Positions 59,889-63,231 of a stretch of 64,000 nt of DNA are shown piece by piece (the stretch's first letter is position 1; every line of letters begins with the position of its first letter). Location: sequence record MW272540.1; one strand, given 5' to 3'. The translations under genes were made by a program, and so were the position numbers. A model generated the notes under the pieces. The model saw only the letters and a list, made by a program, of their open reading frames with translations, made no database searches and was not told the DNA's origin.

Positions 59889-59950
59889 AAGATATCGTGT
59901 TAATATAGGTTTGTCGGGTGAGATTCCCGACAAACAAAAGGTATTTTAGT

Positions 59951-60024
<74 letters not shown>

Positions 60025-62189: not shown

Positions 62190-62198
62190 TAATTAAAT

Positions 62199-62298
62199 GG
62201 TTCTGCCCTTACTAATTTAGAGCGAGATAAGCCCTCGCAGATGGTGATGGTAATCCGCAAGAAGACCATAAACAAAGGCTAATTGGTGAGAACCACCA
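62199..62298 (+). ncRNA. Putative CCA-terminated stable RNA (not a cloverleaf)
   Basis: 5' GGTTCT pairs with 3' AGAACC-A-CCA; internal GCGAG/CTCGC and ATGGT/ACCAT hairpins; no T-loop. Confidence 0.5.
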
Positions 62299-62842: not shown

Positions 62843-62871
62843 TTCACTCCCCTAAATATTTGTGTTATAAT
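62843..62871 (+). promoter_or_regulatory. Nested early and late promoter for the tRNA cluster
   Basis: TTCACT-N17-TATAAT with CTAAATA (62852-62858) inside the spacer. Confidence 0.7.
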
Positions 62872-62895: not shown

Positions 62896-62972
62896 GGTTC
62901 GTTAGCTCAGTTGGTTAGAGCGCCCGCCTGTTAAGTGGAAGGTCGTGGGTTCAAGTCCCACACGAACCGCCA
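62896..62972 (+). tRNA. tRNA-Asn(GUU)
   Basis: GGTTCGT/ACGAACC; CTGTTAA loop; CCA. Confidence 0.92.
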
Positions 62973-62986
62973 AAGAGGATTTTAAT

Positions 62987-63127
62987 CGCTTGTTGAACGT
63001 GGGAAAATAGCAAAATCAGGGAAAGTTGTGCACGACGGAACCTTAAAGTAGCTTTCTAAGTACCTGTTGTCTGGCAGTTCACACATACGTATATTTGTGA
63101 TGGGTTCGAGACCCTAACAAGCGTCCT
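62987..63127 (+). ncRNA. About 140-nt tRNA-like RNA (acceptor stem and T-arm, large non-canonical centre)
   Basis: CGCTTGTT/AACAAGCG; GGG-TTCGAGA-CCC; ends T-CCT; no anticodon arm. Confidence 0.6.
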
Positions 63128-63133
63128 AATTAT

Positions 63134-63215
63134 GGAGACTTTGGTGTATGGCGCACGGTACGTTATAAACACCGCGTACAAGAAACTCCCGTTCGAATCG
63201 GTAGGGTCTCCCCTA
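63134..63215 (+). pseudogene. Degenerate tRNA-like element with distorted anticodon arm
   Basis: GGAGAC/GTCTCC; GTG/CAC D-stem; CCG-TTCGAAT-CGG; CGGT/ACCG encloses an 11-nt loop. Confidence 0.5.
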
Positions 63216-63231
63216 AATTTTATAATCTTAA

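Follow-up and report, generated by a model that had tools for sequence, protein, structure and literature searches.

A conserved tRNA-framed RNA element of Aeromonas T4-like phages as a putative counterpart of T4 species 1 RNA

Bacteriophage T4 RNAC, or species 1 RNA, has been without an assigned function since the 1970s, a period of about 50 years. Its gene rnaC (NC_000866 70908-71046) is 139 nt long and is annotated together with rnaD directly after tRNA-Arg in the T4 tRNA cluster, and blastn identified rnaC in 751 records of enterobacterial phages. A fold of rnaC was derived from T4, a second Tequatrovirus and three Karamvirus relatives. Briefly, the acceptor-like stem has 7 bp, with a tandem U.U that is conserved and a pair 3 that covaries. 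Directly after its 5' strand comes a rod that is unbranched up to its apical loop, then a single-stranded A-rich link, a 10-bp covarying hairpin, and a T arm with a covarying 5-bp stem and the loop UUCGAAU, which precedes the acceptor-like 3' strand. Rfam has no family for T4 rnaC. The roles of RNAC and RNAD were stated as unknown in 2010 (PMC3014915) and in 2022 (PMC9697503), a 2025 paper likewise states that the function is unknown (PMC12685909), and on Northern blots RNAC was a late, stable RNA (PMC9697503). A literature search found no paper on such RNAs in Aeromonas phages.

Other described systems also place a tRNA-like part on a larger RNA. In the engineered tRNA scaffold of Ponchon and Dardel, the acceptor stem and T arm frame a structured foreign RNA that takes the place of the anticodon arm, and in E. 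coli the inserted RNA was precisely processed, modified and protected from decay (PMC3753655). The tRNA-like domain of tmRNA consists of an acceptor stem and T arm joined to the long helix P2, with no true D stem. The YrlA RNAs (RF02553) are small non-coding RNAs with a module mimicking the acceptor/T-arm part of a tRNA, which is internal, and the YrlA terminal stem binds Ro/Rsr.

The stretch analysed here, referred to as the window, is 64,000 nt of Aeromonas phage ZPAH1 (MW272540; Straboviridae, Emmerichvirinae, Ishigurovirus), in which position 62987 corresponds to position 186987 of the record. The element under study occupies 62987-63126 on the plus strand (140 nt) inside the dense tRNA cluster of ZPAH1, in a stretch that carries no annotation in the ZPAH1 record and is overlapped by no ORF longer than 41 aa. 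It is preceded by a tRNA-Asn(GUU) with an encoded CCA (62896-62972, plus strand; ARAGORN, Rfam 69 bits) and followed by an ARAGORN call of 'tRNA-Ile(tat)' (63135-63213). The true tRNAs flanking the element have the full CCA encoded. In the phages compared the element was always located a few nucleotides 3' of a tRNA and on the same strand, the place of tRNA-Asn being taken by tRNA-Met(CAU) in Tulanevirus and Biquartavirus phages. The 14-nt spacer between tRNA-Asn and the element (62973..62986, plus strand) ends in an invariant AAU (AAT before C1 in 11/11 sequences), the U of which is position -1 of the predicted RNase P site. A promoter-like site ahead of tRNA-Asn (62843..62871, plus strand; TTCACT, 17-nt spacer, TG-TATAAT) has 10/12 consensus matches and an extended -10, and possibly marks the start of a transcription unit of tRNA-Asn, the element and the odd tRNA that follows, although the number of such sites in the region was not above that in shuffled sequence.

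The ends of the element have the form of a tRNA. In ZPAH1, CGCUUGUU (62987-62994) pairs with AACAAGCG (63116-63123) through 8 Watson-Crick pairs, of which 7 are conserved across relatives; the eighth is lost in the Aes508 group, and U8 alternatively joins the next helix. The acceptor-type stem defined by comparison and covariation therefore comprises the 5' strand CGCUUGU (62987..62993, plus strand) and the 3' strand ACAAGCG (63117..63123, plus strand), with pairs 1-6 invariant and pair 7 found as U-A, C-G or U-G. The T arm (63102..63114, plus strand) is invariant and consists of GGG (63102-63104), the loop UUCGAGA (63105-63111) and CCC (63112-63114). Only these 3 pairs of the T stem are Watson-Crick, the two outer positions of a normal 5-bp stem being A.A and U.U mismatches. 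The comparison also identified a discriminator that is U or C and an invariant CC (63124..63126, plus strand). The base 3' of the CC is U or G, with A in none of the sequences, and completion of a CCA end would thus depend on the CCA-adding enzyme of the host. In terms of canonical tRNA features the element has the 7-bp acceptor stem, the discriminator, the CC (with the A not encoded) and a T-loop of the UUCRANN type, while the cloverleaf of canonical tRNA (RF00005) is absent, the bases after the acceptor strand covarying with a strand about 70 nt downstream.

Much of this had been anticipated by a sequence-only reading of the stretch, in which the tRNA-type acceptor stem and the TTCGAGA loop were recognised directly from the letters. 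Its 8-bp terminal stem holds for ZPAH1 and shortens to 7 bp across relatives, and the end that it placed at 63127 has been moved to 63126, the last base of the U and CC at 63124-63126. The core that it described as about 100 nt lacking a D/anticodon cloverleaf is about 107 nt long and has neither a D arm nor an anticodon arm, in agreement with the ARAGORN and Rfam results below, and the missing G3:U70 follows from pair 3 being C-G. Its exclusion of a group I intron and of tmRNA was also borne out, the core being too short for the former and no tag being present for the latter. An intron-containing tRNA was considered and rejected since there are no D-arm or anticodon-arm exons and 107 nt is too short for a group I intron; the element thus matches no known intron-containing tRNA, by exons or by Rfam family. 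A tmRNA was rejected given the C-G at pair 3, the lack of an internal AUG-led frame and the negative ARAGORN and Rfam tmRNA searches.

ARAGORN called neither a tRNA nor a tmRNA on the element, and none of the 4227 Rfam families matched it at the gathering score or at E<=10. This included the tRNA model, the intron and ribozyme families and YrlA/Y RNA (RF02553), each at E<=10, as well as the tmRNA families. RF02553 did give a match of 17 bits elsewhere in the window (59909-59979). The folding energy of the element was -34.4 kcal/mol (z = -0.41 versus shuffles), which is no better than shuffled sequence, so stability is no argument for it. A descriptor of the stem plus T-loop gave one unrelated chance match in the 64-kb window on both strands, and at about one chance match per window the pattern alone is not beyond chance. 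Conservation and covariation together put the element beyond chance. A search for a repeated module common to the element and the rest of the ZPAH1 cluster found only T-loop words.

By blastn the element was present at 79-100% identity in 45 phage records, all of Aeromonas T4-like phages of the genera Tulanevirus, Biquartavirus and Ishigurovirus, including 'Stenotrophomonas' phage IME13, which is a Tulanevirus. It was annotated in none of the 45. Between ZPAH1 and the other genera, similarity covered only window positions 62979-63132, the flanks could not be aligned, and similarity to ZPAH1 stopped within 3-4 nt of the predicted RNA ends. The invariant block runs from the AAU directly before C1 to the N-AAU directly after CC, and from this extent the conserved unit is taken to be an RNA delimited by its own terminal stem. 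Among 11 distinct sequences, 101 of the 140 positions were invariant; the spacers adjoining the element vary and carry indels. Whole-genome model searches found one copy per genome in each of five Aeromonas phage genomes. On these comparisons of sequence, the element is a real RNA gene.

Wider searches added few copies. An exact 15-mer search of IMG/VR returned 36 loci, 5 of them true and all in known phages; a three-anchor degenerate pattern gave one true match among 13 loci in JGI metagenomes, and of the 16 loci to which it led in 185,579 species genomes none was true, with no bacterial copy. In all, these databases yielded one or two further copies. The covariance model of the Aeromonas element family (R1) found nothing on 14 T4-like contigs fetched through gp30.3. 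Neither the element nor rnaC was found in phage 65 (NC_015251), Aeh1 (NC_005260), phiAS5 (NC_014636), CC2 (NC_019538) or KVP40 (NC_005083). Phage 65 belongs to the same genus as ZPAH1 yet lacks the element, so the distribution is patchy, and its absence from phage 65, Aeh1, phiAS5 and CC2 indicates that the element is dispensable for Aeromonas T4-like phages generally. The ZPAH1 element was about 93% identical to the Tulanevirus copies within unrelated flanks. This identity across genera, the unrelated flanks and the absence in a congener make lateral transfer of the cassette likely. Phage 65 and CC2 were compared for a clean insertion site and the region was found to be differently organised in both.

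The secondary structure was derived from 11 distinct sequences, which were aligned (alignment A3) and re-aligned on better sequences (alignment A8). In order, the fold comprises the acceptor stem; P2, an irregular rod of 15 bp with two hairpins at its end; a hairpin resembling a variable arm; and the T arm. The 5' strand of P2 (UGAAC GU GGG A AAUAG; 62994..63010, plus strand) begins 0-1 nt after the acceptor 5' strand, which leaves no D arm, and its 3' strand is CUGUUGUCUGGCAGUUCA (63064..63081, plus strand). Of the five basal P2 pairs, three covary (UGAAC/GUUCA, UAGAC/GUCUA, CAGAC/GUCUG), and the outer 10 pairs are invariant except for one G-U/G-C switch. Read from the other strand, three G.U pairs of the ZPAH1 rod would become A.C mismatches, which supports the plus strand, that of the tRNAs, as the RNA strand. 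The rod continues into a mostly invariant, purine-rich junction strand CAAAAUCAGGGAAA (63011..63024, plus strand) and the hairpin P3 (63025..63036, plus strand), which is GUUG-UGCA-CGAC in ZPAH1 and in which three of the four pairs change on both sides, the sequence being replaced between phage groups with the stem kept. It is followed at 63037..63063 (plus strand) by GGAACCUUAAA and a candidate hairpin P4 (63048-63063, GUAGCUU-UCU-AAGUAC), the proposed loop of which contains the one frequently variable position (U/A). P4 is tentative, as its pairs do not covary and one is broken in the 44RR sequence, and for P4, the purine-rich junction (GGGAAAG / GGAACC) and those pairs of the rod that do not vary, the pairing is a prediction. 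The hairpin in the variable-arm position (CACAU...UUGUG; 63082..63099, plus strand) has two pairs that change on both sides and is replaced in the Aes508 group by a different one (UUGGU...ACCA).

In the consensus fold, 94% of pair cells were paired. The alignment of homologues, put forward as a check with the sequence-only reading, had in its A8 form 9 pairs changing on both sides compared with 5.3 +/- 1.2 in shuffles (3/500 shuffles reaching 9) and 0-2 in slid controls, A8 having been fitted to the structure model and so leaning towards that structure. An independent MAFFT alignment had 7 such pairs versus 3.6. The compensatory changes preserve four helices. Readings of the core as a loop E, a kink-turn or a pseudoknot were dropped because the flanking pairs were unfit by eye, and the extra helices G35-G36/C58-C59 and 32-36/58-62 were set aside as having support in only some of the sequences.

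One sequence came from a wastewater metatranscriptome (run X17), in which a 162-nt contig consisted of adapter, the equivalent of window 62993-63130 plus three bases, and adapter. The insert of about 141 nt is a Tulanevirus-type variant of the element whose first base is 6-7 nt into the 5' strand and whose last base is 10 nt beyond the acceptor stem, and it could be of DNA or precursor origin. This one contig may hint at expression of the element.

The comparison with T4 rnaC covers both plan and setting. The two genes are 139 and 140 nt long, are present in one copy per genome and are located in the tRNA cluster, on the tRNA strand, directly after a small RNA or tRNA. Both RNAs have a 7-bp terminal acceptor-like stem beginning C1-G, G2-C, a long irregular rod right after the acceptor 5' strand with no D arm, and a hairpin in the variable-arm position followed by a T arm, the loop in rnaC being of the UUCGAAU type. 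The earlier description of T4 species 1 as an RNA of about 140 nt with tRNA-like ends was accurate in this respect. The rods, however, differ, that of rnaC being unbranched with an invariant UUGACG apical loop, which was not found in the ZPAH1 element, and that of ZPAH1 ending in two hairpins with variable loops. The acceptor stem of rnaC contains the tandem U.U and ends in UA without CC, whereas that of ZPAH1 is fully paired and followed by N-CC. The T stem is 5 bp in rnaC and 3 bp in the element, the variable-arm hairpin 10 bp and 5-6 bp, respectively, and the hosts are enterobacteria in one case and Aeromonas in the other.

Covariance models of the two families did not recognise one another. 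R1 gave no match to T4 rnaC at E<=10 with filters off, and the model of the rnaC family (R2) did not find the element, which was outscored by ordinary class II tRNAs. Whole-genome searches, in which the positive controls worked, gave one R1 match and no R2 match in each of five Aeromonas phages, and one strong R2 match with nothing from R1 beyond tRNA-level noise in each of five rnaC phages. With ten genomes carrying exactly one of the two and five phages carrying neither, the families are alternatives and neither is universal. These results support a separate family of the same kind as rnaC, the resemblance being one of architecture and context only. The placement of the element in a class of phage tRNA-like RNAs of the species 1 type accordingly stands for plan, size and niche and falls short for homology to rnaC, none being detectable. 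The element is probably the Aeromonas-phage counterpart of T4 RNAC, either as an analogue or as a homologue diverged beyond recognition.

The element also differs from the other systems described above. The engineered scaffold is man-made and keeps the D arm, whereas the element is natural, D-armless and has an extra variable-arm hairpin. Compared to tmRNA, which is about 360 nt, the element at 140 nt lacks G3:U70, pseudoknots, a tag ORF and a D-loop analogue between the acceptor stem and P2, and is recognised by neither ARAGORN nor Rfam. In contrast to the internal module of YrlA, the acceptor stem is formed by the element's own termini.

Variation within the rnaC family itself was also observed. 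The cores of the EnC15 and L058 members (L051:429-567, L058:12452-12591) are unrelated to the T4-type core (as in L002:2909-3046(-)), the core types having only the apical loop UUGACG in common, and the frame of acceptor stem, rod base, 10-bp hairpin and T arm was kept. Two further rnaC homologues (L057:11846-11984 and L059:11780-11918, 142-144 bits) have UGCAUGC as T-loop instead of UUCGAAU, which indicates that the canonical T-loop is not essential in the rnaC family. An unannotated 127-nt tRNA-like gene adjoins tRNAs in other T4-like contigs (L055:10463-10589, L056:10683-10809, L059:11985-12111). This gene, which ARAGORN did not call, combines an acceptor stem of 7 bp and a T arm of 5 bp with a D arm of class II type (GAAAUCGGUAGAC), and its anticodon region is enlarged by about 45 nt.

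Given this architecture, the element is probably an independent gene for a stable, non-coding, tRNA-framed RNA, a natural 'tRNA scaffold' whose payload binds a factor. The frame would be the 7-bp acceptor stem, the T arm, the variable-arm-like hairpin and the NCC tail, co-transcribed with the tRNAs. RNase P, the 3' trimming and CCA-adding enzymes and the enzymes that modify the T-loop accept minihelices, and the frame keeps features that tRNA-processing enzymes recognise, namely the acceptor/T-arm stack, the U at -1 and N-CC. We infer that host RNase P would cut exactly at C1 after the invariant AAU, that 3' trimming would stop at NCC with the CCA-adding enzyme completing the end, and that T-loop enzymes would modify U54 and U55. 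Such processing would free the RNA from the tRNA precursor and shield it against decay. Recognition by these enzymes is not assured, the T stem having 3 pairs and no D loop being present to lock the T-loop. The payload would be the 15-bp irregular rod ending in two hairpins, in place of the anticodon/D half, and would carry the activity, most likely by binding or sequestering a protein encoded by the Aeromonas host or the phage. The strands of the payload and the junction are invariant across three phage genera, and it is the rod strands and junction that are invariant and not the hairpin loops, which points to recognition as a shaped helix by a protein and not to base-pairing with a target. 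A design of frame plus payload also fits the finding that the rnaC-family frame carries two different cores.

It is conceivable, though unlikely, that the frame is itself the active part and serves as a decoy or competitor for proteins that bind the acceptor/T-arm, such as host tRNA-targeting defence nucleases or toxins, with the core providing bulk and stability. Phage tRNAs are known to counter tRNA-cleaving defences. The frame is what the two unrelated families have in common, cores are swappable within the rnaC family, and the acceptor stem, T-loop and NCC of the element are invariant, all of which a decoy would explain. Across three genera, however, the core is as invariant as the frame in its rod strands and junction, the element has no anticodon loop, the usual target of the known tRNA nucleases, and the T-loop has degenerated to UGCAUGC in part of the rnaC family.

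The element might instead act in cis within the precursor of the tRNA operon, for example as a guide for processing, a structural spacer or a pause site for transcription, and be degraded once processing is complete. This would account for the constant position directly after a tRNA and for the single RNA-library fragment without the predicted mature ends. Such a role is improbable as the neighbouring tRNA differs between genera (Asn versus Met) with the element unchanged and the conserved block ends where the RNA itself does. A conserved NCC tail and a U at -1 also belong to a molecule that is released, and in T4 the analogous RNA is stable and accumulates (PMC9697503).

The compensatory changes that keep four helices intact, the 101/140 invariant positions next to variable spacers with indels and a tRNA model that is blank even at E<=10 make it very improbable that the element arose by decay of a class II tRNA or is carried along, without function, by recombination and homing endonucleases active in tRNA clusters. 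Decay or passage would be in keeping with the patchy distribution at about 93% identity between distant genera, with the HNH and Seg-type endonuclease genes in these clusters, and with the variable-arm-like hairpin that adjoins the T arm. An aminoacylated RNA acting on the ribosome or in another aminoacyl transfer, in the manner of tmRNA, is hardly credible. The 7-bp acceptor stem, discriminator and CC and an acceptor/rod/T-arm layout resembling the tRNA-like part of tmRNA speak for it, but G3:U70 is missing, the discriminator can be U or C, no reading frame for a tag is present, the only AUG being at the T stem, and the ARAGORN tmRNA search and Rfam tmRNA families were negative.

The scaffold reading can be extended, tentatively, to the T4-like phages at large, which might use a D-armless tRNA frame to deliver host-specific effector RNAs. 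The rnaC payload would then act in enterobacteria and that of the element in Aeromonas, in each case on a factor of the respective host, perhaps one of immunity, that it would neutralise or recruit, and recombination in tRNA clusters would carry the whole cassette (about 147 bp) from one phage to another, unrelated one. This proposal is speculative and we hold it to be possible rather than probable; were it true, the function of T4 species 1 RNA would be revealed by comparing both payloads together with their partners. A second family that is unrelated in sequence and has the same frame, size, niche and one-per-genome rule indicates that the design has been selected and is not an accident of T4, and the two families separate the common part, the tRNA-like frame, from the specific part, the payload. 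The family is new, being unannotated in its carrier records and absent from Rfam, and is of a kind already known but unexplained.

Other features of the ZPAH1 cluster were of interest. The 'tRNA-Ile(tat)' called by ARAGORN directly after the element (63135-63213, plus strand) is 79 nt long with an abnormally placed anticodon, and the Rfam tRNA model gave no match to it, including at E<=10. Its acceptor stem is 7 bp, its T stem is weak and the loop in its anticodon region is oversized. In other genera the element is followed by a tRNA-Ile(CAU), which is not a homologue of this sequence, and blastn matches to 63135-63213 were confined to ZPAH1 and Aswh_1. This stretch may be a second non-canonical tRNA-like RNA. 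Three copies of a motif CTCCCCTAAAT(A/T)TT lie at the edges of small units of tRNA or ncRNA (window 62847-62861 and 63208-63222; L001 5234-5248). The motif includes CTAAATA, which resembles late promoters in some relatives of T4. Directly 3' of tRNA-Leu, a candidate RNA of about 100 nt (62197-62297, plus strand) has a 6-bp terminal stem (GGUUCU/AGAACC) followed by A and CCA, with no T arm, and may be the counterpart of T4 rnaD.
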